46,371 nucleotides of DNA, from assembly GCF_001194135.2 (NCBI RefSeq), contig NC_069009.1:2239759-2286129 (forward strand), written 5' to 3'. Positions 1,016 to 44,149 of the stretch are shown piece after piece. The stretch's first letter is position 1, and every line of letters begins with the position of its first letter. The stretch comes from Octopus bimaculoides. Its lineage: Eukaryota. The notes beneath the pieces are model-generated. The model made no database searches, was not told the origin of the DNA, and was given only the letters and a program-made list of their open reading frames with translations. A program made the position numbers and the translations under genes.

Positions 1016-2033
1016 GCAGGAGAAGAAGATGATAAAACGCCAAACGGAGGATAAAAAGAATATGAATGAATTGACGGAAGAAGAAAAAGAAGTAGAAAAT
1101 AAAAATAACGATAGTAATAATAATAATAATAATAAGAAGAAGAAGAANNNNNNNNNNNNNNNNNNNNNNNNNNNNNNNNNNNNNNNNNNNNNNNNNNNNN
1201 NNNNNNNNNNNNNNNNNNNNNNNNNNNNNNNNNNNNNNNNNNNNNNNNNNNNNNNNNNNNNNNNNNNNNNNNNNNNNNNNNNNNNNNNNNNNNNNNNNNN
1301 NNNNNNNNNNNNNNNNNNNNNNNNNNNNNNNNNNNNNNNNNNNNNNNNNNNNNNNNNNNNNNNNNNNNNNNNNNNNNNNNNNNNNNNNNNNNNNNNNNNN
1401 NNNNNNNNNNNNNNNNNNNNNNNNNNNNNNNNNNNNNNNNNNNNNNNNNNNNNNNNNNNNNNNNNNNNNNNNNNNNNNNNNNNNNNNNNNNNNNNNNNNN
1501 NNNNNNNNNNNNNNNNNNNNNNNNNNNNNNNNNNNNNNNNNNNNNNNNNNNNNNNNNNNNNNNNNNNNNNNNNNNNNNNNNNNNNNNNNNNNNNNNNNNN
1601 NNNNNNNNNNNNNNNNNNNNNNNNNNNNNNNNNNNNNNNNNNNNNNNNNNNNNNNNNNNNNNNNNNNNNNNNNNNNNNNNNNNNNNNNNNNNNNNNNNNN
1701 NNNNNNNNNNNNNNNNNNNNNNNNNNNNNNNNNNNNNNNNNNNNNNNNNNNNNNNNNNNNNNNNNNNNNNNNNNNNNNNNNNNNNNNNNNNNNNNNNNNN
1801 NNNNNNNNNNGGTGGGTTGGAGGTACCGGAAAGGAAGAACAAGTGAAGAAATAAGAACAAGGTGGAGAAATAACAGAAGGGGAAGAACTAGAACTACAGA
1901 CATGAAAAGAAGAAAAACCAGATGCAGAAAGAGATGAGGGTGACAAACTATATAATGCGTCTATAGAAAAACATTACAGATTTAGACAGATATCGTCAAA
2001 TAAACACAATAAACGTAGATTGATTCAACTTAC

Positions 2034-2105
2034 AGAACTGATAAACTGGAAAGATTTCGGAAGGTTTCAGCTTTGATTTTCGTAATTTTATTATCGTTCA
2101 AAGTT
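2034..2105 (-). CDS. LRR exon, class B: [24 protein letters not shown]
   Basis: 72 nt, ttccag| ... |gtaagt, open. Confidence 0.88.
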
Positions 2106-2620: not shown

Positions 2621-3652
2621 TGTGTTTGTCCCCCCAACGTCGCTTGACAACCGATGCTGGTGTGTTTATGTCCCCGTAACTTAGCGGTTCGGCAAAAGAG
2701 ACCAATAGAATAAGTACTGGGCTTCCAAAGAATAAGTCCTGGGGGTCGATTTGCTCGACTAAAAGGCGGTGCTCCAGCATGGCCACAGGCAAATGACTGA
2801 AACAAGTAAAAGAGTAAAAGATTAAAATAATGTAATGATCAACAAGATATTGATGAGGATGCTGGTGGAGATGTTTTCTGCGACACTACGACAGATAGAT
2901 GTGGTAAAAAAAAAAAGAATGAAAAGAATATCAGCATAGCACTTGCAGTGTTAGCAAACGGTCGGTGATATCAGAACGAACATTAGCAGTGGTGGAGAAT
3001 GAAATTAAATGCCACTGAGGTAGCGGTGATTGTGGCAGATAAACTCCCTACCACGGAAGTGCGCTCATACCGACCTCCCTTAGATGCACGCAGAGCGACA
3101 AGACCATAGTGCAAGCAGTCGTCCAGTGTCGTGCATTACTCACATGTAGACTTATGTCGAACAGTTGTTGCTGAGTTTAGTATTGGTCTGATTATGGCCG
3201 ACTCCATAGTGAAGATTGAACCACCTCCTTCCTTGGCCGGGATGAGCAGGGAATTTTCAGTTTTCACTGGGAAAGAAAGGTGAGTTTGGAGAAAGAAGTG
3301 ATGCTATACCCCGTGCATTTGCTGAAATGTATGTCGATGTAGCGAAATGGCTCGTTTGTGTGCGGACCTACTCTTATAATACGTCTGTATGTTGGTGAAT
3401 TTGAGTTTAGTGAATGGGAATTGTTCGCGAGTACCATCGAATCATCGGGTGGGTCAGCATTTGGGGTTACCTGAACCAACCCTGGGTGGTCATCACCTCT
3501 ATTGAGAAAATGTCAGTGTACTTGTCTCGTGTTTTTTGTTATTGTTTTTGTAACTCCTTGTTTTGTATGAAATCCCCACTGTCCCAGTCTAATGTATTGT
3601 CACCTATACATCGGCACTAGTGGCCAATAAATGAAATTATTATTATTATTAT

Positions 3653-3718
<66 letters not shown>

Positions 3719-4191
3719 CAGCAGCAGCAGCAGCAACAGTAGTTCTATATCTTGTTGCTATTGTCGAAGTCGTTGTTATTGATGTGGTAGAAGAAGGAGG
3801 AGGATGTGATTGGTGGAAGAGGAGGGGGAGAAGGAAAAGTAAAAGAAATGTTCAACATAAAAGATGAAATTTAGCCAGATGCATGCTTTGTGTTTAGGAG
3901 TAAATTATGAAGAAATAGAAAAGTTGAAAACAAATTACTCTGAGCTGGAAGGTGTTACAATATTTAAACATGTATAATGTAATTCAGAATAATTAATTAG
4001 AACGGACAGCCATGAATATTAATCAACGTTGATCGAGAAGTAAACATAAACAATGTACAAAAGGAGGTACAAACCAAATCAATCACTCGTGTACTTTCAC
4101 TCATAATGTAAGACACAGACTTACACATAGACATACGCAAAATTATTATATATTAGTTATCAAAAACTGATACATAAAACCAGACACTGAT

Positions 4192-4243
<52 letters not shown>

Positions 4244-7200
4244 TCTTAGACATTCACAACGAATTGCATATTCCTGTGGAAAGCGACTGAGTGCATATAG
4301 TGCGTCAAGGAGAGTGAGAGAAAAAAGAGAGCATGGAAAGACATTAAATGTTTAGAACTATTGGGTTGTCCGGAAAGTTCGTGCCGATTTTTAAATGAAA
4401 GAAAAAGGTTAATAAATACTTGCCATTACATTTTTAATCAACCAAATATTAACCATTTGACGCACAATGCATCTCCATCTTTCCTTTAACTTCAAAATAC
4501 TCTCTTCCCAGAGTTGAGGTGGTTTCATGGTAAAGAATTCATCAAGGTATCTTTCTACGTCATCTAAGGAATTGAAATTTTTACCTTTAAGACTATTCTG
4601 CAGAGACATGAATAAGTGGAAATCCCAAGGAGCAATATCTGGTGAATATTGAGGGTGGGGTAAGACATCCCAACCGAGCTGCAGCAACTTTTGTCTGGTT
4701 CCCAAAGTAACGTGCGGTCTTGCATTATCATGCTGGAAAACAACACCCTTCCTGTTGGCCAATTCTGGACTTTTCTCTTGAATTGCTGCTTTTAACTCGT
4801 CCAGTTGTGTGCAGTATTTCTCAGAATTAATTGTCTAGTTGCTTGGGAGAAGCTCATAGTACAGAATTCCTTTCTAATCCCACCAGACACAAAGCCAAAC
4901 ATTTTTAGGGTAAAAACCCGCTTTTGGGGTAGCTAAGAGTGGCTTATGTCGCTTACTCCAGGATCACTTTCTCTGAACATTTCGGTAGATAATCCATTTC
5001 TCATCACCTGTCACAATTTGCTTTAAAAAAGGCGCATTTTCATTCCGTTTATAAAACGAATTACAGTGGAAATGCGATCCAAAAGGTTCTTTTCCCTTAA
5101 CGCATGTGGTACCCAAACATCGTATGATTTGTGTGCCGAAGTTTTACCAGGTGCTCATGAACGACGGATTTTGATAGGTTTANNNNNNNNNNNNNNNNNN
5201 NNNNNNNNNNNNNNNNNNNNNNNNNNNNNNNNNNNNNNNNNNNNNNNNNNNNNNNNNNNNNNNNNNNNNNNNNNNNNNNNNNNNNNNNNNNNNNNNNNNN
5301 NNNNNNNNNNNNNNNNNNNNNNNNNNNNNNNNNNNNNNNNNNNNNNNNNNNNNNNNNNNNNNNNNNNNNNNNNNNNNNNNNNNNNNNNNNNNNNNNNNNN
5401 NNNNNNNNNNNNNNNNNNNNNNNNNNNNNNNNNNNNNNNNNNNNNNNNNNNNNNNNNNNNNNNNNNNNNNNNNNNNNNNNNNNNNNNNNNNNNNNNNNNN
5501 NNNNNNNNNNNNNNNNNNNNNNNNNNNNNNNNNNNNNNNNNNNNNNNNNNNNNNNNNNNNNNNNNNNNNNNNNNNNNNNNNNNNNNNNNNNNNNNNNNNN
5601 NNNNNNNNNNNNNTACAATGTCCAGCCCGGAACCTTGCGAACCACTTCCGTACAGTCCTTTCGGATAAAGAAACATCACCCTAAACTGCCCATATTTCTT
5701 TGGTTGCTTGAGAGGCATTTTTCCCTTTACGGGAAAGGAAAAACATCTAGTGCCGAAAATGAACTTTCTTATCTTCCATTTTAAAGGGTTACAGAATTAA
5801 CACAGGTTATAGGAACATAAACCTTCTTCCACGAAAAAATAGCTTAAACTGTGCTCTAAATGGAAGTGTCGACAAATCCTATTTTATGGACTCAACCATG
5901 TTCAAACATAAGTCGAAAGGTAAGCTACTATAAATCGGCATGAACTTTCCGGACAACCCAATGAATAAAAGAGAATAAAAAAAAAAAATCCAACTTACAG
6001 AGACGTTAGACTCGGAAGATTCTGAATACATCCAACTTCCAATTCATTGATGTCATTATTAAGCAATTTTCTGTAACAAACAAGTGAACCGTGAAGAAAA
6101 AGAAGAGGAATAGGGGAAGAAGAAGAAGAGGAAAAATAAGAAAAAAGAAGAAGGAGGAGGAGAAGAAGAAGAAAAGAGAAAAACGGTGGAGAATTAGAAA
6201 AAAAACCCGGAAAAGTACAACAGCAACAAGAAAACAGAAGAAGCAGAAAAAGGAGCATAAGAAGAAGAAGAAGAAGAAGAAGAAGATAATAAAGAAGCAG
6301 ATGGATAAGGAAGAAGGAGAAGAAAAAGAAGATGAATAAGAGGTGGAGAATGGGAAGAAATAGGACGAGATGGTGGTGGAAGAAAGTGAAGAAGAAAAAG
6401 GAAAAGAAAAAGAAGAAAAAGAAGAAAGGAGAAAAAGAAGAACAATAACACATGTAAAGTATTTGTTTAAATGTTAGCGTATGGAACATCTGGGTTTGCN
6501 NNNNNNNNNCAGATATTGCAAGATATTACAGATTTAGAAAGACATCGTCAATGAAATAATAGATTGATTCAACTTACAGAGTTCTTAAACTGTAAAGGTT
6601 TTGGAAGCTTCCGGCTTTGATTTCTTCGATATTGTTTTTACTTAAATCCCTGGAGCGAAAAAATTGAGTTGAGAAGAACATTTATGGAACAAATGTGTGA
6701 GAGAATATTAAACAGTATGACTAAAGAATTGGAAGATAGAAGAGACGAAAAGTAGATTACGATATTGTTGATAATGTTGGGTTGGTATGGGTTGATGATT
6801 ATGATGGTAAGGCAGAGGGGAAGAAAATATGGTGGAAGAGTTTATGACGGAGGTGTTATGATGCTGATGATGGGGGTGATGTTGTTAAGGTTGATGATTC
6901 TGATAATGATGGGGATTAGAAGTTTTATTGTGGTGATGAACATGATGTTGATGTTGGTGGTGATGTTGTTTGTTGGTGATGAAGATGACCGTGTTGAAGA
7001 TTGTGTATCTGCAAATGAAGAAGATGAAAAAGAGAAAGAAGAAATGGAAGTGAAGAAGCGGAAGAAGAAAGAGAAGCAGAAGATGAAGATGAAGGAAATG
7101 AATGATGAGGAGAAGACGAATACGTAAAAGAAAGAAGAGTAGAAGAATGGGAGAGGTGGAAGAAGCATAAGGAGAAAAGGATAAGATAATGAAGAAGAAA

Positions 7201-10200
7201 TGGATGTAGAATAAAAGGAGGAAAAAGAAGAACAAAACATCAGCAGCAGTAGAAGAATAGAAGGGAAATGGACGATGAAGAAGAAGAAGAAGAAGAAGAA
7301 GAAGAAGAAGAAGAAGAAGAAGAAGAATCGGAGGGGGAAGAAGCATAGGGGGAATAAGAAGATTGAACGAAGAAGAATCATAAGGAGTTGAATAAGAAAA
7401 AAGTAAAAGAACAACGGAAATGAGAAGCAGAAGAAGAAGGAGGAGGAGNNNNNNNNNNNNNNNNNNNNNNNNNNNNNNNNNNNNNNNNNNNNNNNNNNNN
7501 NNNNNNNNNNNNNNNNNNNNNNNNNNNNNNNNNNNNNNNNNNNNNNNNNNNNNNNNNNNNNNNNNNNNNNNNNNNNNNNNNNNNNNNNNNNNNNNNNNNN
7601 NNNNNNNNNNNNNNNNNNNNNNNNNNNNNNNNNNNNNNNNNNNNNNNNNNNNNNNNNNNNNNNNNNNNNNNNNNNNNNNNNNNNNNNNNNNNNNNNNNNN
7701 NNNNNNNNNNNNNNNNNNNNNNNNNNNNNNNNNNNNNNNNNNNNNNNNNNNNNNNNNNNNNNNNNNNNNNNNNNNNNNNNNNNNNNNNNNNNNNNNNNNN
7801 NNNNNNNNNNNNNNNNNNNNNNNNNNNNNNNNNNNNNNNNNNNNNNNNNNNNNNNNNNNNNNNNNNNNNNNNNNNNNNNNNNNNNNNAGGAGGAGGAAGA
7901 AGAGGAAATGAAGAAAAGAAGTAAAAAAAAAATCAACAACAAGCAGAAGATGGAGGAGAAGCAGAAAGGAAGATAGATTGGTAGAAGAAGACGTTGAAGA
8001 TGAAGATGTTGATAATAAAGAAGAAGAAGAGGAAAGTGAATAAATAAAATAAAAACGGTTGGTGTAGGATGGGAAGGAGGAAAAGAAAATTTTGAATTAG
8101 AAGACGAATAGCTACAAGAGGAAGAAGAAGAAAAAGAGGAAAGAGAAAGAAAAAAGAAGGGGATGAAGGAGAATACGATAAAGAAGAGGAAAGTGAAAAA
8201 GAGGATGAAGAGAAGAAGAGTAAGAAGAAAGAAGAGAAGTACAAGAATGAGGACAATGGTGAGGGTAATGATGACGAGGATGAAGTCCTAAGATATTATG
8301 ATGGTGTCGATGGGGAGTGGAATTTCAGAGGACGGGAAGAAGAAGTAGACGAGGAAGAAGAAGGATAGAATAAGAAAGGCAACAACAACAAAAAAGAATG
8401 TTTTAATATTAGCGTATGAAACATCTAGGGCTAAATATACAACTACAAGAGTTATTCAAGAATGTTATTTAGTGTCTATATAAAGGTGAACACCATGCGT
8501 AATGTACACACGTGTTAATACACTCGTATATACTCATCTGTACACATTGACATGAACAAGCTTACACTAAACGCTTCCTCTTATGTATCAGGTTCCCATT
8601 TATCCAATATCTTAGAAATGGGGCCACACTCACATTCACAGACGTTCACGAACAATAAAACGCATGTATAGAAAGACGGTTGTAGAAGCTTAAATTGATG
8701 TACGGGAAGACATTACAGAATTATAAAGATATCGTCAACGAAATAATATAAAATAGAATTGATACAACTTACAGAGTTGTTAAACTGGAAAGATTTTGGA
8801 AAGTTCCAGCAATAATTTCTTTGATTTCGTTATCTCCCAAATTCCTGGAACATAGAATTGAGTTAAGAAGAACATTTATGGAAAACATTTGTGAGAGAAT
8901 ATTTAATATCATGTCTACAGAACTGGATGATAGAAGCGATGGACTGTAGAATTACTATCAAGATGAACCTCAAGATGTTGTTGATAATGTTGGATAGGTA
9001 TGGAAGCAGAAATGAATATGATGATGAGGCAGCGGAGAAGAAAATATTGTGGGCGTGTATATGACGAAGGTATTATGATGCTGATGATGGGGGTGATGTT
9101 GTTAATATTGATTACTATGATAATGATGGTGATTAGAAGTTTTATTGTGATGATGAACATGATATTTCTATTAATGCTGGTGTTGATGTCCTCTGTTGGT
9201 GACGAAGATTACGGTGTTGAAGATTGTGTATCTGGAAAGGAAGAAGAAGAAGAAGAAGAAGAAGAAGAAGAAGAAGAAGAAGAAGAAGAAGAAGAAGAAG
9301 AAGAAGAAGAAGAAGAAGAAGAAGAAGAGCAAGAACAATAACACCAGAAAATAAGAAGGGGCACAGGAGGAAATGATGCATTAGAAGGAAAAGAAGAAAC
9401 ATATTGTAGAGAAAGAGGAGAAAAGTGAGACTAAGGAAATATACAATTGGGTTAGGAGAAAAAGAAGACGTAGGTGAATTAGAAGAAGAAGAAAAAGAAG
9501 AAGAAGAAGTGCAACAAAAACAAGAATGAGAAAAGTAGAAAAAGTAGAAAATGAAGAAGCAGAACAGTAGATGAAGAATACGAAGAGGTTAAGTAGAGCA
9601 TCAAGAAGCAGAAGCAGGAAGAAAAGAAGGTTGTACATACCGATACATGTTTATATTTACACACACTCGTACTCACACATATGTATAGAAACTCTACAAA
9701 CACACATTTCTATCAAAGGGGTTTGAGAATGTAATGATAGAGAAGGATGGGACGCGAATGAAAATGGGAAGGTCCTAAATATTCAGTAATTTCAATGAAA
9801 TATTATCAACAATATTAATGCAACTTACAGATATTCTAAGCTGGTCAGACCTTCGAAGGATCCTACTTGAATTTTCTGGATTTTACTTTCATCCAAATTT
9901 TTATAACATAGAATTTTGTAAACGGGATTTATTGTAAAATATCATGAGTGAAATAACTTCGTGTAGGAAAAGAAAGCTAGATGAGTATGAATGTGATGAT
10001 AATATTAAAGAGGAGGAGGGGAGGAGGATTGAATTTCGAGGTGGTGGTGGTGGTGGTATGGATGACCATGAAGCAGAAACTAATGACAGGAGGACGGTGG
10101 TAGTGTTGATGAAGAAAATGGTGTTGCTGATGATGGCGATAAATTTTGTGATAACGGTGATGAGGAAGACATGTATCATGATGATGTTGATTATGATGAT

Positions 10201-28277: not shown

Positions 28278-28335
<58 letters not shown>

Positions 28336-34300: not shown

Positions 34301-36803
34301 CCTTGATTTCGTTATTACCCAATTTCCTGGAACATAAAATTGAGTTAAGAACATCTATGGAACAAATGTGTGAGAGAATATTTGATATTATGTCTACAGA
34401 ACTAGATANNNNNNNNNNNNNNNNNNNNNNNNNNNNNNNNNNNNNNNNNNNNNNNNNNNNNNNNNNNNNNNNNNNNNNNNNNNNNNNNNNNNNNNNNNNN
34501 NNNNNNNNNNNNNNNNNNNNNNNNNNNNNNNNNNNNNNNNNNNNNNNNNNNNNNNNNNNNNNNNNNNNNNNNNNNNNNNNNNNNNNNNNNNNNNNNNNNN
34601 NNNNNNNNNNNNNNNNNNNNNNNNNNNNNNNNNNNNNNNNNNNNNNNNNNNNNNNNNNNNNNNNNNNNNNNNNNNNNNNNNNNNNNNNNNNNNNNNNNNN
34701 NNNNNNNNNNNNNNNNNNNNNNNNNNNNNNNNNNNNNNNNNNNNNNNNNNNNNNNNNNNNNNNNNNNNNNNNNNNNNNNNNNNNNNNNNNNNNNNNNNNN
34801 NNNNNNNNNNNNNNNNNNNNNNNNNNNNNNNNNNNNNNNNNNNNNNNNNNNNNNNNNNNNNNNNNNNNNNNNNNNNNNNNNNNNNNNNNNNNNNNNNNNN
34901 NNNNNNNNNNNNNNNNNNNNNNNNNNNNNNNNNNNNNNNNNNNNNNNNNNNNNNNNNNNNNNNNNNNNNNNNNNNNNNNNNNNNNNNNNNNNNNNNNNNN
35001 NNNNNNNNNNNNNNNNNNNNNNNNNNNNNNNNNNNNNNNNNNNNNNNNNNNNNNNNNNNNNNNNNNNNNNNNNNNNNNNNNNNNNNNAGACAGTAGAGAA
35101 TTAGAAGGATATCCTCAATGAAATACTATCAAATAAGATTGATTCAACTTACAGAGTTGTTAAACTGGAAAGATTTTTGAAGGTTCCTGCTTGGATTTCC
35201 TTGATTTCGTTATTACCCAATTTCCTGGAACATAAAATTGAGTTAAGAACATCTATGGAACAAATGTGTGAGAGAATATTTGATATTATGTCTACAGAAC
35301 TAGATAATGGAAGAGATGGAATGTAGCTTACTATCATGACGAGGTTCTAGATGGTGTTGTGCAATGAGGGCAGTGACGAATATGAGGATGAGGCAGAGAA
35401 GAAATTAATGTGGGAGTAATGATGATGATGGTGATGATGAGGAGGATGAGGATGATATGATCCTGAAGATGGAGGATGATATGATCCTGAAGATGTCGAA
35501 CAGTTGTTGTCGCGTGTTGGATGGATCTGACTATCGGCGGAGTCAATAGTGAAGATCGACACGCCACCTGCCTTGGCCAGAAAGCGCAGCCAATGTTCCT
35601 CTGACTGGTAGCAGTAGCGAAGGAGTTTATGAGTTGGACCAGGTCGCAAGGCCTGAACACCGATTTTTCTCTTCCGCCAATCCCTCATCAACTTTTATAG
35701 AATTCTCTTTGAAAGAAGATGAAGCTGGAGAAAGAAGTGATGCCCCTAGTGCATTTTCAGAAATTACTGTCAGTTTATAAGGAAATGCATATTATTCCTG
35801 AGGCAATCGACAGATTGTATATTTTGTATATAGTGCGTCAACGAGAGTGAGGAAAAAAAGAAAGCATGGAAAGAGATTAAATGTTTAGGATTATATTGTC
35901 AATAAGAGAGAAAGAAAAAACTAATGAAACTTACAGAGTCGTTAAACTGGGAAGAGTTTGAAGAGATCCAACTTCTAATTCATTGATTTCATTATTATAC
36001 AACTCTCTGTAACAAAAAATAGGGAATAGTGAAAAAATGTATATAAGTTCGTAATGAAATATAAAATAGAACTACATGCAGTGAAAAGCATGTAAAAAAA
36101 TATGTAGAAGAGGAGGATAAAGTAGAAGTAGAAGTAGGAGGGAAATGATGTGGAGGAAGAGTAGTAGGAGGAGGGGGAGGAGGAGGAGGAGGAGGGGCGG
36201 AAGAAGTAAAAGAACAAAGTGGAGAAGAAATGGCAGAAAAGGAAGGACTACAACTACAGACGGGAAAAGAAGCAGAAAAAGACACATCTATAGAAAGACA
36301 TTACAGATTTAGAACGATATCCCCAAAGAAATACTATAAACGTAGGTTGATTCAACTTACAGATTTGTCAAACTGGAAAGATTTTCGAAGGTCCCTGCTT
36401 TGATTTTCTTAATTTCATTAACGTACAATTTCCTGGAATATAACATTAAGAACATTTATTGAACAAATTTGTGACTAAAGAATTGGATGATGGAAGAGAT
36501 GAAAAGTAGATTAACATCTTGAACTTTATAATGATGATGAGGATACTGTTGTGTGTGGTGGGGACTGTGATGAGAATGATGATGTGGCAGAGGAGAAGAA
36601 ATGATTGTGGGAGTGTATATGATGATGTTATGAGGATGATGATGGGGGTGATGTTAATTTTGATCCTTGTGAAAGTGATGAGGATTTTCTAGTTTTTGTT
36701 GTGATGAAGAATATGATATTGATGATGATGTTGGTGGAGAGGTTTTCTGTTGGTGATGATGTTGATGACGTTGGTGATTTTTCATGTGTAAAAGAAGAAG
36801 AAG

Positions 36804-36834: not shown

Positions 36835-37906
36835 CCTATGGTGTTTATTTTGTAATAGTTTTGTAGCTGTACTAGGCCTGTACCACCTTCTGTACGTTGC
36901 GCTGTATATATAACCTTTGTATGGCTGATGTTCAGTGGTGCATCCTAATTCCTGACATTATTTTCTTTGTTTTCTGTGTGTTTTGATTGGTTCATTCAGA
37001 ATCCAGTTAATGATACTGCAACTGAATCTTTTAGAGGAAGGAGGAGGAAGATGTAGTGGGAGAAGGAGGAGGAAAAGAAATGCTCAACAGAAAAGATCTT
37101 TCGCGTTTGGGAGTAAATGAAGAAGAAATAGAAAAGTGTAAAATAAATTACTCTGAGTATAAACATAAATAATGTCATTCACAATTTATAATTAGAACGG
37201 AAATCCATGAATGGTAATCAGCGTTCATCGAGATGTAAATATAATAAATAATATACAAAAGGATATACAAATGAAGTCGATACACTCGTATACATTCACT
37301 CAGACTGAAAAACACAGATTGACATATGCACATACATACACAAAATCATCTATATTAATTATAACAATACCACACAGTGATACTCACACAAACACACACT
37401 CACACACGTACTCCTTCTCAGACATTCACAAAGAATTGCATATTCCTGTGGAAAGCAACTGAATGTATATAGTGAGTCAAGGAGAGTGAGAGAAAAAAGA
37501 AAGCATGGGAAGACATTAAATGTTTATAATTATATTATGAATAAAAGAGAGTCAAAAACTAATGCGACTTACAGAGTTATTAGACTGGGAAGATTTTGAA
37601 AAGATCCAACTTCTAATTCATTGATAGCATTATTATTCAAAGTTCTGTAATAAAAAGTGAGACGTGAAAAAATGTATACAGGGTCGTAATGCAATATAAT
37701 GCCTAAAAATTTAGGCAAGTAATCGCTGATGATGACGGGGTTGATGATGATGTTGATTATGATGGTGGTGGTTGCTGTCGTGGTGATGGTGGTGGTTGCT
37801 GTCGTGGTGATGGTTGTGATAATTCGGAGGATGAGGATGATGGTGATATTGTTCATGTTGATACTCATGCTTATCATGGTGGTGATGATGATGATGATGA
37901 TGATGA

Positions 37907-39445: not shown

Positions 39446-42400
39446 GGTGGTGGTGGTGGTGGTGTTAGTAGTAGTAGTGGCAGCAGCAGCATTACCTGTA
39501 GTAGTAAAAAAAGAGAGAGGAAAGAAGAAGAGGCAGAACAAGAATATGACCAAGGAGAATAAGCGTATGAATCATCTGGCGCGAAACATAAGGGGTTTCG
39601 ATTCTCAATTAAACTCCGTGTGTAATACACATACATACACGCACATCCATAAATCCATACACAGAGACATACACAGAGACATACACAGAGACATACACAT
39701 GCATGCACTGAATGCCTCTCCTCAGGTATCACGCTCCTATATGCCTCACATCTCAGAAATGAGCCCACAATCATATTCACACACATTCACAAAATATGAA
39801 TTGCATCTATACAAAAGACATTACAGACTTAGAAAGATATCATCGACGAAATACTATAAACGTAGGTTGATTCAACTTACAGTATTATTAAACTGGAAAG
39901 ATTTCGGAAGGTTTCTGCTTTGATTTTCTTAATTTTATTACCGCTCAAACCCCTGGAACATAAAATTGAGTTAAGAACATTTATGGAAGAAATATGTGCC
40001 TAAACAATTGGATTATGGAAGAGATGAACAAATACGTTAATATCATGAGAGCTTCATGATGATGTTGTAAATAATATTGGGTAGTGATGAGTATGATGAT
40101 ATGGCAGAGTAAAAGAAATTACTGCGGGGCTGTTGATGATGATATTATGATGCTGATGATGGGGGTGATTTTGGTAATTTTGTTAATTGTGAAAATGATG
40201 CTGATTCGCAGTCCTTGTTGTGATGATGAATATGATAATGACGTTGAAGATTGTGTATATTTGAAATGATAATAATAATAAGAAGAAAACACGAAAAAGA
40301 ACAGGAGGATCAGATGAAGGAGAAGGTAAAGAAAAGGAAGACGAAGAAGAAGGAAGGGAAGAAGAATGAGGATAATGGTGAGGGTAATGATGACGAGGAT
40401 GAAGTCCTAAGATATTATGATGGTGTCGATGGGGAGTGGAATTTCAGAGGACGGGAAGAAGAAGTAGACGAGGAAGAAGAAGGATAGAATAAGAAAGGCA
40501 ACAACAACAAAAAAGAATGTTTTAATATTAGCGTATGAAACATCTAGGGCTAAATATACAACTACAAGAGTTATTCAAGAATGTTATTTAGTGTCTATAT
40601 AAAGGTGAACACCATGCGTAATGTACACACGTGTTAATACACTCGTATATACTCATCTGTACACATTGACATGCACAAGCTTACACTAAACGNNNNNNNN
40701 NNNNNNNNNNNNNNNNNNNNNNNNNNNNNNNNNNNNNNNNNNNNNNNNNNNNNNNNNNNNNNNNNNNNNNNNNNNNNNNNNNNNNNNNNNNNNNNNNNNN
40801 NNNNNNNNNNNNNNNNNNNNNNNNNNNNNNNNNNNNNNNNNNNNNNNNNNNNNNNNNNNNNNNNNNNNNNNNNNNNNNNNNNNNNNNNNNNNNNNNNNNN
40901 NNNNNNNNNNNNNNNNNNNNNNNNNNNNNNNNNNNNNNNNNNNNNNNNNNNNNNNNNNNNNNNNNNNNNNNNNNNNNNNNNNNNNNNNNNNNNNNNNNNN
41001 NNNNNNNNNNNNNNNNNNNNNNNNNNNNNNNNNNNNNNNNNNNNNNNNNNNNNNNNNNNNNNNNNNNNNNNNNNNNNNNNNNNNNNNNNNNNNNNNNNNN
41101 NNNNNNNNNNNNNNNNNNNNNNNNNNNNNNNNNNNNNNNNNNNNNNNNNNNNNNNNNNNNNNNNNNNNNNNNNNNNNNNNNNNNNNNNNNNNNNNNNNNN
41201 NNNNNNNNNNNNNNNNNNNNNNNNNNNNNNNNNNNNNNNNNNNNNNNNNNNNNNNNNNNNNNNNNNNNNNNNNNNNNNNNNNNNNNNNNNNNNNNNNNNN
41301 NNNNNNNNNNNNNNNNNNNNNNNNNNNNNNNNNNNNNNNNAGAAGAAGAAGAAGAAGAAGAAGAAGAAGAAGAAGAAGAAGAAGAAGAAGAAGAAGAAGA
41401 AGAAGAAGAAGAAGAAGAAGAAGAAGAAGAAGGATCGATGGCGGAAGAATCATAAGGAGAGAAATAGGATAGGATGAAGAAGAACCAGGAGGAGATGCAG
41501 AAAACAAAGAACAACAGCAACAACAAGCAAATGATGTAGAAGTAGAACAGAAGAAGAAGAAGAAGAAAAAGAAAAAAAGAAGTAGAACAGAAGAAGAAGA
41601 AGAAAAAGGAGAAATAGAAGAAAAGCCAGCAAAACAACTTGTAAAGAATTTGCTAAGCGTATGAGTCATCTGGGGGTTGAGGTAAACACCGTACGTAATA
41701 TATACACATGTTAATACACTTATCCATACACATAGACATAAAGCATAAATTAGAGGCTTCCCCTGAAGTATCACGCTCCTATATATATACTATATCTCAG
41801 AAAAACAATAAAAAGAATCTCTAGACACACGGGTGTGGGAGCTTAAATTAAAGTATGGGTAGACATGGCAGATTTAGAAAGACATTGTCAATGAAATAGT
41901 ATAAAAGAAGATTTATTCAACTTACAGAGTTGTTAAATTTGAAAGAATTTGGAAGGTTCCGGTTTCGATTTCTTTGATATTGTTTTTACTTAAATCCCTG
42001 GAGCGAAAAAATTGAGTTGAGAAGAACATTTATGGAACAAATGTGTGAGAGAATATTAAACATTATGACTAAAGAATTGGAAGATAGAAGAGACGAAAAG
42101 TATATTACGATATTTTCGATAATGTTGGTTAGGTGTAGGTTGAAGTAGCAGAAGTAGACGAAGAAAGAATTTGTTTCGATGTTAGCGTATGAATCATCTG
42201 GGGCTAAAAATAGGATGCTATTTAGCGTCTATCGAGGTAAACCATGTGTAATGTGACACACATGTTAATACACGCGTTTATACTCATTCGTACACATAGA
42301 CATACACAGGCATACACTAAATGCTTCCCCTCAAGTATGACACTCCCATATATCCCATATCTTACAAATGGACCCACACTCAAATTCACAGAATTTCACG

Positions 42401-44149
42401 AAAAATATGACGCAAATATAGAAAGACGATTGTGGGAGCTTAAATAGATGTACGGGAAGACATTATAGAAGTAGAAAAATATCGTCAGCGAAATAATATA
42501 AAATAAGATTGATTCAACTTACAGAATTGTTAAACTCGAAAGATTTTGAAAGGTTTCTGCATTGATTTCCAGAATATCGTTGTCACGTAAATCCCTGCAA
42601 TGTAAAATTGAATTAAGTAGAACATTTCAGGAACAAATGTGTCGGAGAATATGTAATATTTTGCCAAAAGAATTGGATGGTGGACGAGAGGAAATGTAGA
42701 TTACCATTATGATGAACTTCAGGAACAACAACTATAACAACAGTAACAGCAACAACAAGCAACAGTAGAAGAATAGAAAAGAAATGTTTGGTGAAGAAGA
42801 GGAGGAAAGAGAAGAAAAAGTATCGGAGTTGGAAGATGCATAAGGAGAAAAAGAAGATAGGATGAAGAAGAATCAGACGGAGATGAAGAAGGAAGATAAG
42901 AAAAGGAAAAACGACTGGAAACACAAGCAGAAGATGTTGAAGTAGAAAATAATAAGTCGTAGAAGAACAGGACGAAGGAAATGAAGGGGAATATATGAAA
43001 ATGTCTGGTGAAGAATGGGGAGGAGGAGAAAATGTTGAATAAGATGAGGAAAGAGTATAAGAGAAGAAGGAGTATAAGAGAAGAAGTAGAAGTAGAAAAT
43101 GAAGAAGAAGGGAAAGAAAAGTCGAATCAGATGAAGGAATATAAAGGAGAAAAAGATAAAGAAGAGGAAAGAGAAAAGAAGAATAAAAATAAGAATAGGA
43201 TGCAACAGAAGAAGTATAATACTCGCATCTTTACATCGATCGTTTTATTACCAAATTCACACTGACTATTCACATCCCTCGTCACCCGATTTCACATCGC
43301 CAACCTTTCTCCGACTGATTTCCTTATCAACTTCACACTGAATGCAGTCCCTCGTCACCTGACTTCACACCAACTGTTCACATCGCATCTCATCGCCAAA
43401 TCGTCTCATCACCCAGCTCTGATCGCCAACTTTCACAAAGCCTATCTCTCTTCACCCAAATCTCATTGTCAACTGACCGATGCCATGCGTTCCATTGCCA
43501 GTTTAAATTGCCTCACAATAAAAACACAAAAGGAACGTGTAACATACTTTAAACTAGTCACATGATCATGAACATTATTTCTCATTACAATGAATTACGA
43601 TCCATTCTTGGTTTATTTTGTAGAACTATAGAACATTATTTCGATTAGTACCATTTAAAATTATATTATTCAAACTAATTCCGCCATTCTATACTCTCCT
43701 TCATAACAACAATATATGCAATACTTTTTGCTAACAACAGCAGTTTTCACACATTCCGTTCCCTGAAAAGTTCAGATACTGGTGTACAATACTGTAAGTT
43801 ATAGATTCCACATAAAAACAGTGAACGCTGGGTAATATATTGGCCACTTTTTACTCTAACATGTTTTAAAGCTGAGATCAACAACACAAGTTATTAGTCC
43901 AGAACATAAACAACAAGAATTTAAAACTTGGAATGTGGAAAATACGTAGAAAAGGTCGAATACTTACAGACGCGTAACATTCGGCGGAATAGATTGTGGG
44001 ACCGAAGTCAGTCCCCGAGATGAACAATCTATTTTTTCTTGAGAATATGTACAGCTACATATGCTGCAAACGTCTGACGCAGCATGTGACTCCAAACATA
44101 ATCTCATAAAGAGAACCAACACAAAAGTCAATTTGAATTGTTGGAACAT
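2034..44149 (-). CDS. Multi-exon extracellular leucine-rich-repeat protein: signal peptide + LRRNT + at least 28 24-aa LRRs; 3' end lies outside the window (below position 1)
   Basis: A 182-nt first coding exon ends in phase 2. It is followed by 28 intact 72-nt exons, each with AG/GT sites and no stop, which join in frame (CT|A or CT|G = Leu) to give xLxxNxIxxI/LxxxxFxxLxxLxxL repeats (at least 732 aa). No stop codon, LRRCT or TM domain is seen in the window. Confidence 0.88.
2373..2820 (+). mobile_element. tRNA-derived SINE (octopus-type) with internal (AT)n(GT)n
   Basis: A-box-like tggctgtgtgg, B-box-like ggttcagtccc, cttgggcaagtgtcttctactatagcc core and a short repeated tail (agtaaaag)2. 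Recognised as an abundant octopus SINE from memory, not by search. Confidence 0.8.
2940..3660 (+). mobile_element. L1/Tx1-like LINE ORF2 3' end with AATAAA and (ATT)n tail
   Basis: Decayed zinc-finger region (DKL..HGS...[16 protein letters not shown]), then gtggccaataaatgaaattattatt. Confidence 0.55.
4197..4241. repeat. (CA)n microsatellite
   Basis: Direct reading. Confidence 0.95.
4361..5961 (-). mobile_element. Mariner DNA transposon with both TIRs and a disrupted transposase; internal gap
   Basis: 30-bp TIRs ttgggttgtccggaaagttc(g/a)tgccgattt at 4361-4390 and 5932-5961 (1 mismatch); TA at the left end. ORF 4409-4762 contains FQHDNARPH and [16 protein letters not shown]. Confidence 0.92.
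5999..6070 (-). CDS. LRR exon, class A: [24 protein letters not shown]
   Basis: 72 nt, ttacag| ... |gtaagt, open. Confidence 0.88.
6578..6649 (-). CDS. LRR exon, class B: [24 protein letters not shown]
   Basis: 72 nt, ctccag| ... |gtaagt, open. Confidence 0.88.
8773..8844 (-). CDS. LRR exon, class B: [24 protein letters not shown]
   Basis: 72 nt, ttccag| ... |gtaagt, open. Confidence 0.88.
9241..9328. repeat. (GAA)n microsatellite; others at about 7279-7326, 33438-33508 and 41341-41431
   Basis: Direct reading. Confidence 0.95.
9829..9900 (-). pseudogene. Divergent LRR exon with non-canonical acceptor: [24 protein letters not shown]
   Basis: 72 nt, open, perfect |gtaagttg donor. The acceptor reads ttctatgttataa| where paralogues have ttctatgttccag|. 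Confidence 0.7.
11729..11800 (-). CDS. LRR exon, class B: [24 protein letters not shown]
   Basis: 72 nt, ttccag| ... |gtaagt, open. Confidence 0.88.
12300..13165 (-). mobile_element. Penelope-like element fragments (RT N-terminus and GIY-YIG-like tail)
   Basis: Minus translation [24 protein letters not shown] and [12 protein letters not shown] (Penelope FYGLPKxH motif); internally deleted. Confidence 0.65.
13259..13330 (-). CDS. LRR exon, class A: [24 protein letters not shown]
   Basis: 72 nt, ttacag| ... |gtaagt, open. Confidence 0.88.
14063..14134 (-). pseudogene. Degenerate LRR exon with dead donor: [24 protein letters not shown]
   Basis: Good acceptor (ttcttgtctttcag|) and exactly 72 nt of open LRR-like frame, but the donor reads |ctaatt instead of |gtaagt. 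Several consensus residues are altered. Confidence 0.7.
14835..15850 (-). mobile_element. 3' fragment of an RLE-type (R4/Dong-like) LINE
   Basis: Minus translation [28 protein letters not shown] (restriction-like endonuclease region) and [11 protein letters not shown]; decayed. Confidence 0.75.
16138..16209 (-). CDS. LRR exon, class A: [24 protein letters not shown]
   Basis: 72 nt with intact sites; one nt different from 13259-13330. Confidence 0.85.
16597..16668 (-). CDS. LRR exon, class B: [24 protein letters not shown]
   Basis: 72 nt, tttcag| ... |gtaagt, open. Confidence 0.88.
16915..16986 (-). CDS. LRR exon, class B: [24 protein letters not shown]
   Basis: 72 nt, ttccag| ... |gtaagt, open. 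Confidence 0.88.
17110..17500 (-). mobile_element. Related Penelope-like fragment
   Basis: Shares ccaattctcgacgacaatcagat..ttgcgtctgt with about 12575-12610. Confidence 0.45.
17520..18490 (+). mobile_element. L1/Tx1-like LINE fragments (ORF2 pieces and 3' end)
   Basis: ORFs 17521-17874 and 17881-18141 ([13 protein letters not shown]); 3' end homologous to 3340-3650 and 24470-24780. Confidence 0.55.
19276..19347 (-). CDS. LRR exon, class A: [24 protein letters not shown]
   Basis: 72 nt, ttacag| ... |gtaagt, open. Confidence 0.88.
20717..20788 (-). CDS. LRR exon, class B: [24 protein letters not shown]
   Basis: 72 nt, ttccag| ... |gtaagt, open. Confidence 0.88.
21130..21990 (+). mobile_element. 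Decayed LINE ORF1-like fragment
   Basis: Complex, non-microsatellite ORFs 21325-21735 and 21573-21854; ccggagtggatctg.agatattt is shared with 24413-24440; absent from the paralogous intron 31958-32703. Confidence 0.4.
22255..22326 (-). CDS. LRR exon, class A: [24 protein letters not shown]
   Basis: 72 nt, ctacag| ... |gtaagt, open. Confidence 0.88.
22983..23054 (-). CDS. LRR exon, class B: [24 protein letters not shown]
   Basis: 72 nt, tttcag| ... |gtaagt, open. Confidence 0.88.
23300..23371 (-). CDS. LRR exon, class B: [24 protein letters not shown]
   Basis: 72 nt, ttccag| ... |gtaagt, open. Confidence 0.88.
23979..24050 (-). CDS. LRR exon, class B: [24 protein letters not shown]
   Basis: 72 nt, ttccag| ... 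|gtaagt, open. Confidence 0.88.
24805..26326 (-). mobile_element. Internally deleted R4/Dong-clade non-LTR retrotransposon flanked by (TAA)n
   Basis: [49 protein letters not shown] and [11 protein letters not shown] (RT), fused to the C-terminal [19 protein letters not shown] and 3' UTR; frameshifted. Confidence 0.85.
26652..26723 (-). CDS. LRR exon, class A: [24 protein letters not shown]
   Basis: 72 nt, ttacag| ... |gtaagt, open. Confidence 0.88.
26900..27375. repeat. Minisatellite, 5 copies of an 87-96-nt unit
   Basis: ggtgttcgtgttgaagatgaggctgatgctggtggtagtgg at about 26927, 27022, 27109, 27196 and 27292, separated by variable (GGT)n(GAT)n. Confidence 0.9.
27811..27882 (-). CDS. LRR exon, class B: [24 protein letters not shown]
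   Basis: 72 nt, tttcag| ... |gtaagt, open. Confidence 0.88.
28670..29480 (-). mobile_element. 3' fragment of the same RLE-type LINE family, ending in (TAA)n
   Basis: [15 protein letters not shown] and [23 protein letters not shown]; 3' end runs into (TAA)n at about 28600-28668. Confidence 0.75.
29505..29760 (+). mobile_element. L1/Tx1-like fragment, also present at 35495-35760
   Basis: gtcgaacagttgttgtcgcgtgttggatggatctgactatc... is near-identical in both copies and homologous to 17890-18130. Confidence 0.55.
29893..29964 (-). CDS. LRR exon, class A: [24 protein letters not shown]
   Basis: 72 nt, ttacag| ... GT|gtaagt (junction codon Val instead of Leu), open. Confidence 0.85.
30540..30890 (-). 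mobile_element. Mariner transposase N-terminal HTH fragment
   Basis: ORF 30616-30924: [19 protein letters not shown]...[16 protein letters not shown], a Mos1-like HTH. Confidence 0.8.
30890..31095 (-). mobile_element. Second SINE family, partial, reverse orientation
   Basis: Reverse complement aggcggcgatctagcagaatcc...ctttcatcctttcttggtcgattaaataagtaccagttatgcactggggtcgatgtaat matches a common cephalopod SINE body as I recall it. Confidence 0.7.
31887..31958 (-). CDS. LRR exon, class B: [24 protein letters not shown]
   Basis: 72 nt with intact sites; one nt different from 20717-20788. Confidence 0.88.
32703..32764 (-). other. Gap-truncated copy of the class A exon at 33139-33210
   Basis: 32557-32764 repeats 32993-33200 across gap 32765-32992; probably an assembly overlap. 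Confidence 0.6.
33139..33210 (-). CDS. LRR exon, class A: [24 protein letters not shown]
   Basis: 72 nt, ctacag| ... |gtaagt, open. Confidence 0.88.
33938..34009 (-). CDS. LRR exon, class B: [24 protein letters not shown]
   Basis: 72 nt, tttcag| ... |gtaagt, open. Confidence 0.88.
34255..34326 (-). CDS. LRR exon, class B: [24 protein letters not shown]
   Basis: 72 nt, ttccag| ... |gtaagt, open; same peptide as 23300-23371. Confidence 0.85.
35153..35224 (-). CDS. LRR exon, class B: [24 protein letters not shown] (one of an identical pair flanking gap 34409-35087)
   Basis: 72 nt with intact sites. 35088-35306 repeats 34190-34408 across the gap, so one copy may be an assembly overlap. Confidence 0.6.
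35935..36006 (-). CDS. LRR exon, class A: [24 protein letters not shown]
   Basis: 72 nt, ttacag| ... |gtaagt, open. Confidence 0.88.
36361..36432 (-). CDS. LRR exon, class B: [24 protein letters not shown]
   Basis: 72 nt, ttccag| ... |gtaagt, open. Confidence 0.88.
37573..37644 (-). CDS. LRR exon, class A: [24 protein letters not shown]
   Basis: 72 nt, ttacag| ... |gtaagt, open. Confidence 0.88.
39085..39188. repeat. (TAG)n microsatellite; others at about 3655-3718, 18575-18618, 22409-22459 and 28281-28333
   Basis: Direct reading. Confidence 0.95.
39881..39952 (-). CDS. LRR exon, class B: [24 protein letters not shown]
   Basis: 72 nt, ttccag| ... |gtaagt, open. Confidence 0.88.
41926..41997 (-). 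CDS. LRR exon, class B: [24 protein letters not shown]
   Basis: 72 nt, ctccag| ... |gtaagt, open; paralogue of 6578-6649. Confidence 0.88.
42523..42594 (-). CDS. LRR exon, class B: [24 protein letters not shown]
   Basis: 72 nt, ttgcag| ... |gtaagt, open frame. Confidence 0.88.
43968..44149 (-). CDS. First coding exon: signal peptide + LRRNT cap ([61 protein letters not shown])
   Basis: Hydrophobic N-terminus; CxxCxC...[16 protein letters not shown] is a classic LRRNT. Donor CT|gtaagt at 43968/43967. Upstream acceptor ttcttttacag| at 44169 implies a 5' UTR exon further upstream that I could not locate. Confidence 0.92.

Follow-up and report, generated by a model that had tools for sequence, protein, structure and literature searches.

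Tandem leucine-rich repeat (LRR) exons in an octopus genome raise the question of why each exon is bordered by long stretches of intron shared with other exons of the array. The stretch of DNA analysed here, referred to as the window, consists of 46,371 nucleotides of Octopus bimaculoides (NC_069009.1, positions 2,239,759 to 2,286,129). A sequence-only reading had described its exons as lying in duplicated cassettes with conserved intronic homology arms, and had offered three meanings for the arms: substrates for unequal crossover or gene conversion, conserved splice-control elements, or traces of recent duplication only. By comparing the arms with synonymous sites, with deep intron and with related loci, we suggest that the shared intron flanks are for the most part neutral remnants left by repeated joint duplication of exon and intron, with some exchange between copies, and not special control elements. 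The explanation that we favour as a whole, and consider likely, is a long LRR gene shaped by duplication of modules and blocks, with roughly neutral arms and occasional exchange among them.

The array lies on the minus strand and comprises at least 52 LRR exons spread over about 80 kb, 29 of which fall within the window (Table 1). Its limits had been given as 1940-42720; it actually opens with the first exon at 44149-43968 and runs on for about 36 kb beyond the low end of the window, where 23 further LRR exons past 2034..2105 reach window coordinate -35729. Each LRR exon is exactly 72 nt long, in phase 1-1, bordered by AG and GTAAGT, and encodes one leucine-rich repeat; the minus strand has 35 instances of the motif GTAAGT, the plus strand 9. 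Because every exon has this length and phase, entire modules of exon plus intron can be added, removed or exchanged with the frame kept. Joined behind the signal-peptide/LRRNT exon, the 52 exons give a single open frame of 1308 amino acids. Only two exon classes, A and B, had been distinguished; further exon and arm types occur downstream of the window and one lies inside it (9829-9900). The latter is probably a dead exon, the skipping of which the frame would survive. The window likely represents the 5' two-thirds of one very long putative minus-strand gene, or of a recently functional one.

Table 1. Features of the LRR exon array and of its assembly, in window coordinates
Feature	Position	Strand	Basis or remark
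Exon 1: ATG, signal peptide, LRRNT-like Cys cluster, donor GTAAGT, translation ...PPNVTR	43968..44149	-	translation
LRR exon 1, class B-like	42523..42594	-	
LRR exon 2, class B variant	41926..41997	-	
LRR exon 3, class B	39881..39952	-	
LRR exon 4, class A	37573..37644	-	
LRR exon 5, class B	36361..36432	-	
Super-unit X, five exons A-Bg-Bs-A-B	31887..36006	-	88-94% block matches to Y, Z; members 35935-36006 (A), 35153-35224 (Bg), 33938-34009 (Bs), 33139-33210 (A), 31887-31958 (B)
Super-unit Y plus three extra exons	20717..29964	-	block matches; members 29893-29964 (A), 27811-27882 (B), 26652-26723 (A), 23979-24050 (B), 23300-23371 (Bg), 22983-23054 (Bs), 22255-22326 (A), 20717-20788 (B)
Perfect-identity run, 217 nt (exon and both proximal arms), vs Bg cassette of X	23236..23452	-	
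Perfect-identity run, 138 nt (acceptor arm and first exon half), vs cassette 31887-31958	20751..20888	-	
Super-unit Z	13259..19347	-	block matches; members 19276-19347 (A), 16915-16986 (Bg), 16597-16668 (Bs), 16138-16209 (A), 13259-13330 (A)
LRR exon, class B	11729..11800	-	identical to exon at window -1383..-1454
Donor-arm conversion-like tract	11350..11699	-	99-100% to donor arms at -1383, -20853
LRR exon, third type	9829..9900	-	acceptor AA vs AG in paralogues
LRR exon, class B	8773..8844	-	
LRR exon, class B variant, partner of 41926-41997	6578..6649	-	
LRR exon, class A	5999..6070	-	
Insertion of about 1.6 kb in class A donor arm of 5999-6070, 39 nt past splice site	4362..5959	-	mariner-type transposase fragment (4409-4834) and gap 5183-5613
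Displaced rest of donor arm of exon 5999-6070	3636..4361	-	alignment, at 75% to donor-arm positions 40-766 of exon 19276-19347
Final LRR exon in window, class B	2034..2105	-	
End overlap, 208 bp	32557-32764 = 32993-33200		across gap 32765-32992
End overlap, 219 bp	34190-34408 = 35088-35306		across gap 34409-35087
End overlap, 55 bp, intronic	25840-25894 = 25905-25959		

The predicted protein matches Pfam LRR_8 (E = 7e-169, 16 stretches), and LRR_4 and LRR_5 match too. Exon logos show invariant residues at L2, N5, I7, I/L10, F15, L18 and L21; at these scaffold residues pN is about 0 and pS above 0, positions 1, 3, 4, 6, 22 and 23 have pN of 0.35-0.62, and overall dN/dS is high (0.66-0.82). Exon 1 carries a CxxCxC...C pattern, and its match to LRRNT (PF01462; 19.2 bits, E 9e-4) lies under the cut-off of 25.8.

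An octopus-specific expansion of adhesion GPCRs, termed group 3, includes members with LRRs (reported in 5 of 22), and family members are under positive selection and expressed in suckers and nerve cord (Ritschard et al. 2019, PMC6408891); the paper contains no description of the exon-cassette structure. Both exon 1 and the LRR type of the locus are homologous to those of O. sinensis and O. bimaculoides family proteins: exon 1 is 62% identical to the homologous signal-peptide/LRRNT exon of O. sinensis P0010, and 38 exon-1-like copies occur genome-wide, many of them beside C-terminal or 7TM exons of the family. These homologous proteins have an SP-LRRNT-LRR-LRRCT-Cys-rich-SEA-GAIN/GPS-7TM architecture, their genes are clustered on the same chromosome-scale contig as the locus, and P0140 combines a complete SP-LRR-GPS-7TM architecture with an LRR super-unit of its own. 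Unlike these genes, the locus yielded no LRRCT, GPS or 7TM exons. A 3' end (LRRCT, Cys-rich, SEA, GPS, 7TM) was not found within 50 kb downstream, nor did inspection of the open reading frames downstream and between the two arrays reveal one. The 116 kb around the window contain no 7tm_2 match (about 4 kb of the downstream 13 kb are gaps), 7tm_2 matches on contig C29 being confined to 0.75-0.91, 4.12 and 10.94-10.96 Mb. Likewise, neither a search of the genome with the C-terminus of P0053 nor local tblastn with the C-termini of four family members gave LRRCT-like 'DLRNN..MMCGCHLPALVNYT', Cys-rich or SEA-like modules near the locus. We nevertheless regard membership of the locus gene in an octopus-specific LRR/adhesion-GPCR-related family as likely.

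The assembly is short-read based, and 13 gaps fall within the window. At three of them the contig ends overlap with 100% identity, such that the incomplete class A exon at 32703-32774 is a spurious duplicate of 33139-33210, and the class B exons 34255-34326 and 35153-35224 are one exon. The earlier statement that each exon sits in its own duplicated cassette is accordingly right for real cassettes and wrong for these two. None of the remaining gaps breaks an exon; gaps 6500-6509 and 11700-11709 fall within donor arms, and exon order over gaps depends on scaffolding alone. A largely artefactual cassette pattern, produced by repeats that were collapsed or wrongly scaffolded, by haplotigs or by copying during gap closure, would be in keeping with two exon copies and one intronic segment that are proven end-overlap duplicates, with the many gaps, some of which adjoin tracts of at least 99% identity, and with redundant unplaced scaffolds such as C71545, which holds a 100% copy of exon 1. 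It is very unlikely, however, as most cassette pairs are only 72-94% identical, the cassettes lie within contiguous contigs with their own microsatellites and insertions, and a like exon/arm design is present in the gap-free O. sinensis scaffold L015 (no N). No public protein model using exon 1 of the locus was found. Since the locus is partly mis-assembled and absent from public protein sets, counts of cephalopod LRR adhesion GPCRs (e.g. the 5/22 above) are probably underestimates.

Every motif by which shared class A and B donor and acceptor arms had been recognised was recovered, always on the minus strand: the class B donor motif at 11 sites and the class B acceptor motif at 14 (up to 3 mismatches), and the class A donor motif at 11, the class A mid-arm motif at 10 and 'gtcgctttccacaggaat' at 7 (up to 2-3 mismatches). 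By chance alone, a 25-nt pattern that allows up to 3 mismatches would be expected about 5e-6 times in 93 kb. The lengths first ascribed to the arms, 100-450 nt in class B and up to about 900 nt in class A, do occur, but typical homology is shorter. In exon-anchored pairwise HSPs, in-register homology between same-class pairs extends to a median of 90-230 nt on each side; roughly 50% of these pairs can still be aligned at 100-150 nt but fewer than 20% beyond 300-400 nt, and arms of 700-1100 nt are found solely between recently duplicated multi-exon blocks. The fading of the arms into trinucleotide tracts was correctly seen: intron interiors are rich in microsatellites, on the plus strand (GAA)n, (GAT)n, (TAG)n, (TGG)n and (ATT)n, and the arms fade because these interiors consist of microsatellites and transposon insertions. 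TE fragments within introns, and matches of bases 157-334 (of window 1-400) to many chromosomes, might suggest that the repeated unit is itself a transposable element, or a SINE with an LRR-like ORF. Yet class A and B cassettes occur only at the locus, related family loci and unplaced scaffolds, and the copies run strictly head-to-tail on one strand and in one reading frame, which makes this idea scarcely credible. Specifically, the only places with cassette DNA are C29:2.22-2.31 Mb, an array in inverted orientation at 2.35-2.37 Mb, unplaced scaffolds and a handful of family loci, and a transposon origin of the arms was rejected on account of this distribution.

Arm divergence was set against two neutral yardsticks. 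Identity at codon positions 1/2/3 is 0.81/0.85/0.84 in class A and 0.76/0.78/0.73 in class B, and arm identity over 30-150 nt is 0.70-0.86 (A) and 0.73-0.80 (B); exon pS is 0.20 (A) and 0.33 (B) vs an arm divergence of 0.14-0.30. A second yardstick is provided by C59088, a colinear paralogous copy of the locus with which alignments span whole introns. Identity to this copy is 0.928 in exons, 0.913-0.919 in acceptor arms, 0.95 in the donor arm at 1-100 nt, 0.87-0.89 at 101-300 nt, and 0.903 in deep intron (6256 columns). Arm divergence is thus close to both synonymous and deep-intron divergence, that is, to neutral divergence, and homology is organised in blocks, so the third of the earlier proposals, recent duplication only, was mostly right. 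Only the first 100 nt or so past the donor are slightly raised (0.95 vs 0.90 in deep intron, and also above synonymous sites), which leaves room for some constraint or conversion bias near the donor.

These same profiles bear on whether the arms are intronic splicing controls, either enhancers and silencers or Dscam-like docking/selector pairs, that govern inclusion or mutually exclusive choice of exons. Conserved flanks of about 100 nt are typical for alternative exons, and those seen here resemble them, with the donor-proximal 100 nt slightly above deep intron; phase 1-1 throughout would keep any subset of exons in frame; and proximal motifs of about 25 nt on both sides of the exons are common to O. 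sinensis genes and to paralogues about 60% identical. In the comparison with O. sinensis, which used the shorter loci L015 and L016 (the P0010 locus spans 229 kb and the P0140 locus 209 kb), and with distant paralogues whose exons are about 60% identical, only these 25 nt or so beside each splice site are held in common. They comprise a branch-point-like CTTAAC/CTCAAT, a pyrimidine tract, AG, and an extended donor GTAAGTTGAATCAA, and are old and probably serve as ordinary splice signals. Past about 100 nt, however, the arms are conserved no better than deep intron, their divergence approximates pS, and an insertion of 1.6 kb interrupts one donor arm at +39. For every combination of arms, including those between arm types, RNAduplex energies equalled those of dinucleotide-shuffled controls, and the docking/selector hypothesis was rejected because the duplexes were no better than the shuffles. 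We consider splicing control by the arms unlikely; the proposal of conserved splice-control elements finds no support beyond ordinary splice signals, given sharing limited to about 25 nt, lack of complementarity and the split donor arm. Conserved flanks of tandemly duplicated exons alone are no sign of control elements.

Block duplication is reflected in the higher-order structure of the array. An A-Bg-Bs-A-B unit occurs three times at 88-94% identity, with homology across whole short introns; some neighbouring cassettes are only 245 nt apart. Copy number varies as well: over the span from exon 42594 to exon 8844 the window contains 26 LRR exons, and the colinear part of C59088 about 10. Superimposed on the blocks are mosaics. 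Unit Z exons 16138-16209 and 13259-13330 have a common 237-nt core (99.2%) and unrelated flanks; positions 41976-42062 (acceptor arm and exon start of 41926-41997) are identical to the 6578-6649 cassette, the remainder being about 66% identical; and the blocks around the perfect run at 23236..23452 are elsewhere about 85-90% alike to unit X. A donor-arm tract of about 257-370 nt is 99-100% identical in three cassettes (11729-11800, -1383 and -20853), while the exon and acceptor arm of -20853 are merely 85-90% alike to those of its tract partners, and 80-90% homology returns farther downstream. One boundary of the 11350..11699 tract coincides with the edge of the abutting 10-N gap 11700-11709, and given the gaps and the proven end-overlap artefacts, tracts of 99-100% could partly be gap-closure artefacts. 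The screen for identical runs also gave microsatellite runs (e.g. x41997/x9900 at +566..+655), which were disregarded, and its p-values are inflated because low-identity far flanks depress the background identity.

Separate trees for the donor arm and for the acceptor arm plus exon conflict significantly: for clades picked after distances were seen, the donor-arm clade is incompatible with the acceptor-plus-exon data (AU p = 6.5e-5), as is the acceptor-plus-exon clade with the donor-arm data (AU p = 0.025). Tree conflict and mosaics are thus present, in place of the congruent trees and absence of conversion tracts that would have spoken against exchange. As an evolutionary process, the use of the arms in crossover or conversion is supported by the threefold super-unit, C59088, the mosaics and the trees; their upkeep for that purpose is unsupported. 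Exchange is a by-product of any tandem repeat, and nothing indicates that the arms are maintained for it.

Tandem duplication of exon-plus-intron modules and of multi-exon blocks has probably enlarged the array repeatedly, and unequal crossing-over between misaligned cassettes would drive the duplication. The homology arms would then be the still-alignable portion of co-duplicated introns, decaying about neutrally, and would seem to fade where microsatellite and transposon interiors undergo rapid turnover. From time to time, non-allelic cassettes would exchange sequence by gene conversion or crossover, which would re-homogenise patches and so give rise to mosaic cassettes. Selection would act on the exons, with the structural L, N, I and F residues fixed and concave-face positions free or diversifying. 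An octopus-specific receptor family may in this way lengthen and remodel its ligand-binding solenoid fast, via in-frame duplication and exchange of modules.

More specialised forms of diversification can also be envisaged. The arms might be kept as recombination substrates for a programmed, possibly somatic, diversification of the LRR ectodomain by copy choice, as in lamprey VLRs; mosaic exchange among cassettes, hypervariable concave-face residues, and the positive selection and sucker and nerve-cord expression published for family members (PMC6408891) would fit. But VLRs pair an incomplete germline gene with donor cassettes that have no splice sites, whereas the octopus cassettes are colinear, in frame and bordered by canonical AG/GTAAGT sites; the arms evolve neutrally, and germline unequal exchange suffices for everything seen. 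Such a program is highly improbable. Quite unlikely, too, is that the 52-exon array acts as an active diversity generator of a surface receptor specific to octopus, through combinatorial skipping of exons (helped by the slight conservation of the intron next to donors), rapid germline reshuffling via unequal exchange, or both; if it did, it would supply many ectodomain variants with hypervariable concave faces for chemotactile or neuronal recognition, as a counterpart of Dscam and protocadherins.

The mechanism appears ordinary and the locus notable, and its closest resemblance is to the 90-bp LRR exon arrays of Tetrahymena. Thousands of Tetrahymena genes contain tandem arrays of 1-51 such exons, ascribed to unequal crossing-over and exon shuffling (2019, PMC6564038). 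Features common to both systems are long arrays (at least 52 exons here), one exact exon length, one LRR per exon, uniform phase, and co-duplicated exon/intron units of variable copy number. Unlike the Tetrahymena exons (90 nt, phase 2), those of octopus are 72 nt in phase 1, and they belong to an animal gene with kb-sized, microsatellite-rich introns at a single locus. The LINE-like element adjoining the Tetrahymena arrays has no consistent counterpart in the octopus array, where 28 introns hold just one RVT_1 fragment (25103-25537) and one transposase fragment. As in concerted evolution (of plant NLR LRR regions, for example), there are higher-order blocks, mosaics, conflict between partition trees, and hypervariable solvent-exposed LRR positions; plant NLR-type arrays are built from whole genes or intron-less repeats, whereas the octopus unit is an exon plus intron inside one gene. 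With Dscam1 and other mutually exclusive clusters the array shares many similar tandem exons, exchangeable in frame, and conserved flanking intron, but it differs in having no docking/selector complementarity and in exons that are additive repeats of one solenoid, not alternatives for one position.

Among animal genes, LGR/glycoprotein-hormone receptors and Slit have 72-nt exons of symmetric phase that each encode one 24-residue LRR, and so in these genes, as in the octopus, array length is changeable through exon gain and loss. The LGR and Slit arrays are ancient and have remained stable among orthologues, with only about 7-18 repeats and with introns unrelated to one another; the octopus array, by contrast, is several-fold longer and young enough for its introns to align. 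To our knowledge, an array of at least 52 is among the longest arrays of single-LRR exons in an animal.

The gene lies on the minus strand, where GTAAGT occurs 35 times in the window as against 9 on the plus strand, and the motifs quoted in the sequence-only reading were all found in the window, every one on the minus strand. The gene begins at 44149 with a first exon that codes for a signal peptide followed by a Cys cluster resembling LRRNT; the later exons are exactly 72 nt long (AG...GTAAGT), all in phase 1-1, each encoding one 24-residue LRR. Once artefacts are excluded, the window holds 29 LRR exons and the same-contig flank below its low end adds 23, which makes 52 exons in all; they span at least 79.9 kb, and the introns between them measure 213-3893 nt, with a median of 1369 nt. 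The array had been placed at 1940-42720 and in fact reaches beyond both limits. The joined reading frame stays open over 1308 residues, and Pfam finds in its translation LRR families only (LRR_8, E = 7e-169), plus a weak LRRNT. An LRR exon of a third type, at 9829-9900 (minus strand), has AA at its acceptor where its three downstream paralogues have AG; it was probably inactivated recently, and the frame survives its skipping.

Residues L2, N5, I7, I/L10, F15, L18 and L21 are invariant despite synonymous changes, and positions 1, 3, 4, 6, 22 and 23, which are the concave-face x positions of LxxLxLxxN, each show 5-9 different residues; their pN, 0.35-0.62, equals or exceeds the mean pS. The exons are thus real, structurally constrained LRRs, with a binding face that may be either free or diversifying, relaxed constraint and positive selection being inseparable here.

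The window (G000:C29:2239759-2286129) comes from an assembly of 2.34 Gb in 145,327 contigs and contains 13 N-runs. Joins at three gaps are spurious, the left contig end being repeated at 100% identity at the right contig start. Because the 208-bp and 219-bp overlaps each duplicate an LRR exon, two of the cassettes (exons with their flanking intron arms) noted from the sequence are single exons written twice; none of the remaining gaps cuts an exon.

Gap-associated features of the window, and sequence identity of exons, arms and deep intron (donor arm, alignable intron after the donor site; acceptor arm, alignable intron before the exon)
Feature	Coordinates or interval	Length	Identity	Basis
End overlap	32557-32764 = 32993-33200	208 bp	100%	across gap
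End overlap	34190-34408 = 35088-35306	219 bp	100%	across gap
End overlap	25840-25894 = 25905-25959	55 bp	100%	across gap
Gap within donor arm	6500-6509
Gap within donor arm	11700-11709
Class A exon	codon positions 1/2/3: 0.81/0.85/0.84		0.83	exon-anchored same-class pairs
Class A acceptor arm	beyond 10 nt		0.66-0.74
Class A donor arm	30-150 nt		0.79-0.86
Class B exon	codon positions 1/2/3: 0.76/0.78/0.73		0.756	exon-anchored same-class pairs
Class B, both arms	30-150 nt		0.71-0.80
Exons			0.928	C59088 vs window
Acceptor arm	1-30 nt		0.913	C59088 vs window
Acceptor arm	31-100 nt		0.919	C59088 vs window
Acceptor arm	101-300 nt		0.893	C59088 vs window
Donor arm	1-30 nt		0.952	C59088 vs window
Donor arm	31-100 nt		0.949	C59088 vs window
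Donor arm	101-300 nt		0.868	C59088 vs window
Deep intron	>300 nt	6256 columns	0.903	C59088 vs window

When each same-class pair is anchored on the exon and its in-register BLAST alignment taken, the median homology per side is 110-230 nt in class A and 91-123 nt in class B; alignment persists to 100-150 nt in about half of the pairs and past 300-400 nt in <20%. Typical arms measure 100-250 nt, which corrects the lengths first described. Pooled Nei-Gojobori estimates put pS at 0.20 in class A and 0.33 in class B, and pN at 0.17 and 0.24 respectively; taken with the tabulated arm identities, they indicate that arm divergence in both classes is close to the synonymous rate. The clearest comparison is with the unplaced scaffold C59088, on which a paralogous copy of the locus is found in colinear order (86-93% identical) and whose alignments to the window span entire introns: compared like for like, arm conservation essentially matches that of deep intron, and a modest excess is confined to the first ~100 nt past the donor. 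Exon 1 of C59088 contains a TAA, one of its acceptors is broken ('ccat') and its LRR exons are far fewer, so that C59088 is likely a pseudogenised paralogue. In older comparisons the arms fade because intron interiors consist of trinucleotide microsatellites and insertions. An insertion of ~1.6 kb at 4362-5959 (minus strand), 39 nt after the donor of exon 5999-6070, splits a class A donor arm that picks up again at 4361-3636; it contains part of a transposase of mariner type (Transposase_1 in Pfam, E 4e-5, 23.8 bits for a cut-off of 24) and the gap 5183-5613.

Two O. sinensis loci, L015 (gap-free) and L016, likewise have 72-nt phase 1-1 LRR exons, and share with the window the acceptor motif cttcttaac.caattttat.ttccag and the donor motif gtaagttgaatcaatcttcttttata. 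In these paralogue-level comparisons homology continues past the proximal motifs, reaching about 40-100 nt before the acceptor and 100-200 nt after the donor, with flank identity close to exon identity (0.75-0.80). The ~25 nt adjoining each splice site appear to be a normal branch point, pyrimidine tract and extended donor, in a form typical of the family. RNA duplex energies for all arm-type combinations equal those of dinucleotide shuffles, which leaves no signal of docking or selector pairing between arms. The cassettes are no dispersed repeat: they are confined to C29:2.22-2.31 Mb (minus strand), an inverted array at 2.35-2.37 Mb, a few copies of 76-81% near full-length family genes, and small unplaced scaffolds.

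Self-comparison, proposed in the sequence-only reading, brings out a five-exon super-unit A-Bg-Bs-A-B (Bg and Bs are class B variants) in three copies at 88-94%, the homology taking in entire short introns. For the counterparts of exons 42594 to 8844, C59088 has about 10 LRR exons and the window 26, and the LRR array of P0140, an O. sinensis family protein, is a multi-LRR unit likewise repeated. Read from sequence, the super-unit copies, the exon deficit and the P0140 repeat are the signature that unequal crossing-over would leave. Cassettes 11800, -1383 and -20853 (named by exon coordinate, negative values lying beyond the window's low end) have in common a tract of the donor arm, at 99-100% identity and with identical runs of 257-370 nt; in its exon and acceptor arm, -20853 matches the other two at 85-90%, and homology of 80-90% returns farther downstream. 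Switch points in the -1383/-20853 pair are free of gaps, and one mosaic tract boundary falls on a 10-N gap. The assembly underlying the window and the mosaic tracts is short-read based, and gap closure in such assemblies could copy paralogous reads. Other pairs show identical runs of 217, 138 and 87 nt across exon and proximal arms. Separate trees by cassette part, also proposed beforehand, agree on most groups and conflict significantly on one: among clades picked after inspection, acceptor-arm and exon data support {34009, 23054, 16668} (98/95) and reject {34009, -1383, -20853} (AU p = 6.5e-5), and the donor arms give the opposite result, with support for the second clade (99/95) and rejection of the first (p = 0.025). 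Mantel correlations among partitions are just 0.19-0.56. Separately, class A cassettes 13173-13409 and 16052-16288 share a 237-nt core (exon and ~80 nt each side) at 99.2%, with unrelated outer flanks and the gap 14220-14644 between them; this reflects the duplication or conversion of a piece the size of a cassette, or else an effect of assembly.

We propose that exon-plus-intron modules would have been duplicated in tandem, that their intron parts would decay neutrally, and that occasional non-allelic exchange between cassettes would be superimposed; the arms are best explained as a by-product of module duplication and exchange, and no device. The original observation holds once corrected for strand (the gene is minus), two false cassettes, arm length and array extent; of the readings attached to it, recent duplication with neutral arms is mostly right, exchange between cassettes is supported as an evolutionary process, and splice control beyond ordinary splice signals is not supported. 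Animal receptors with one LRR per 72-nt exon, such as LGRs and Slit, are a precedent, and the locus is notable for array length, youth and absence from annotation; the mechanism is not new.

The nearest named proteins are octopus P0010, P0053, P0057 and P0140, built of a signal peptide, LRRNT, LRRs, an LRRCT-like motif, a Cys-rich module and SEA-like module(s), full-length members additionally carrying GAIN/GPS and 7TM. This architecture agrees with a group of co-localised adhesion GPCRs that Ritschard et al. 2019 (PMC6408891) described as expanded specifically in octopus; they reported LRRs in 5/22 members, signs of positive selection, and expression in skin, suckers and axial nerve cord. For the 3' part of the window gene, a search of 116 kb found no GPS, 7TM or family C-terminal exon, and its exon 1 is absent from every public protein model; the gene is therefore a putative member of the GPCR family, on the homology of its exon 1 and LRRs only. 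The last LRR exon is 13 kb from the next gene, ~4 kb of that being gaps. This neighbour (L008), with a weak His_Phos_2 match (E 0.0095), limits the room for the missing 3' end; its first exon, at about -49470 to -49997 (minus strand), encodes a histidine-phosphatase motif of the RHGxRxP type together with a signal peptide. In O. sinensis the genes of this family extend over hundreds of kb: the P0010 model covers 229 kb for a protein of 461 aa and the P0140 model 209 kb for one of 1566 aa, which implies either huge introns or many intervening LRR exons skipped or unannotated.

Upstream of exon 1 in the window there is another array, also on the minus strand and made up of class A and B exons (L009-L010, 54578-65086, C29:2294336-2304844, on to C29:2.312 Mb), for which no first or terminal exon was found in the stretch between the two arrays; the inverted array is at C29:2.346-2.366 Mb, and exon 1 is copied at 100% on the unplaced scaffold C71545 (2-169). 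RVT_1 ORF fragments (E 2e-8) of a LINE-like element occupy 25103-26272 (minus strand), within the intron that separates exon 26652-26723 from exon 23979-24050; a 10-N gap in this stretch, flanked by the 55-bp perfect overlap, is an assembly artefact. A minisatellite at 26910-27371 (87-nt unit, 5.1 copies, 86% matches, (TGG/TGA)n-like triplets) is the source of long but spurious ORFs rich in His, Pro and Ser on each strand. An intronic segment is repeated at 97-99% at 1-371, 14673-15051 and -17399..-17571, starting right after gaps in two places; its bases 157-334 match many chromosomes at 72-80% and so represent a dispersed repeat, possibly a SINE.
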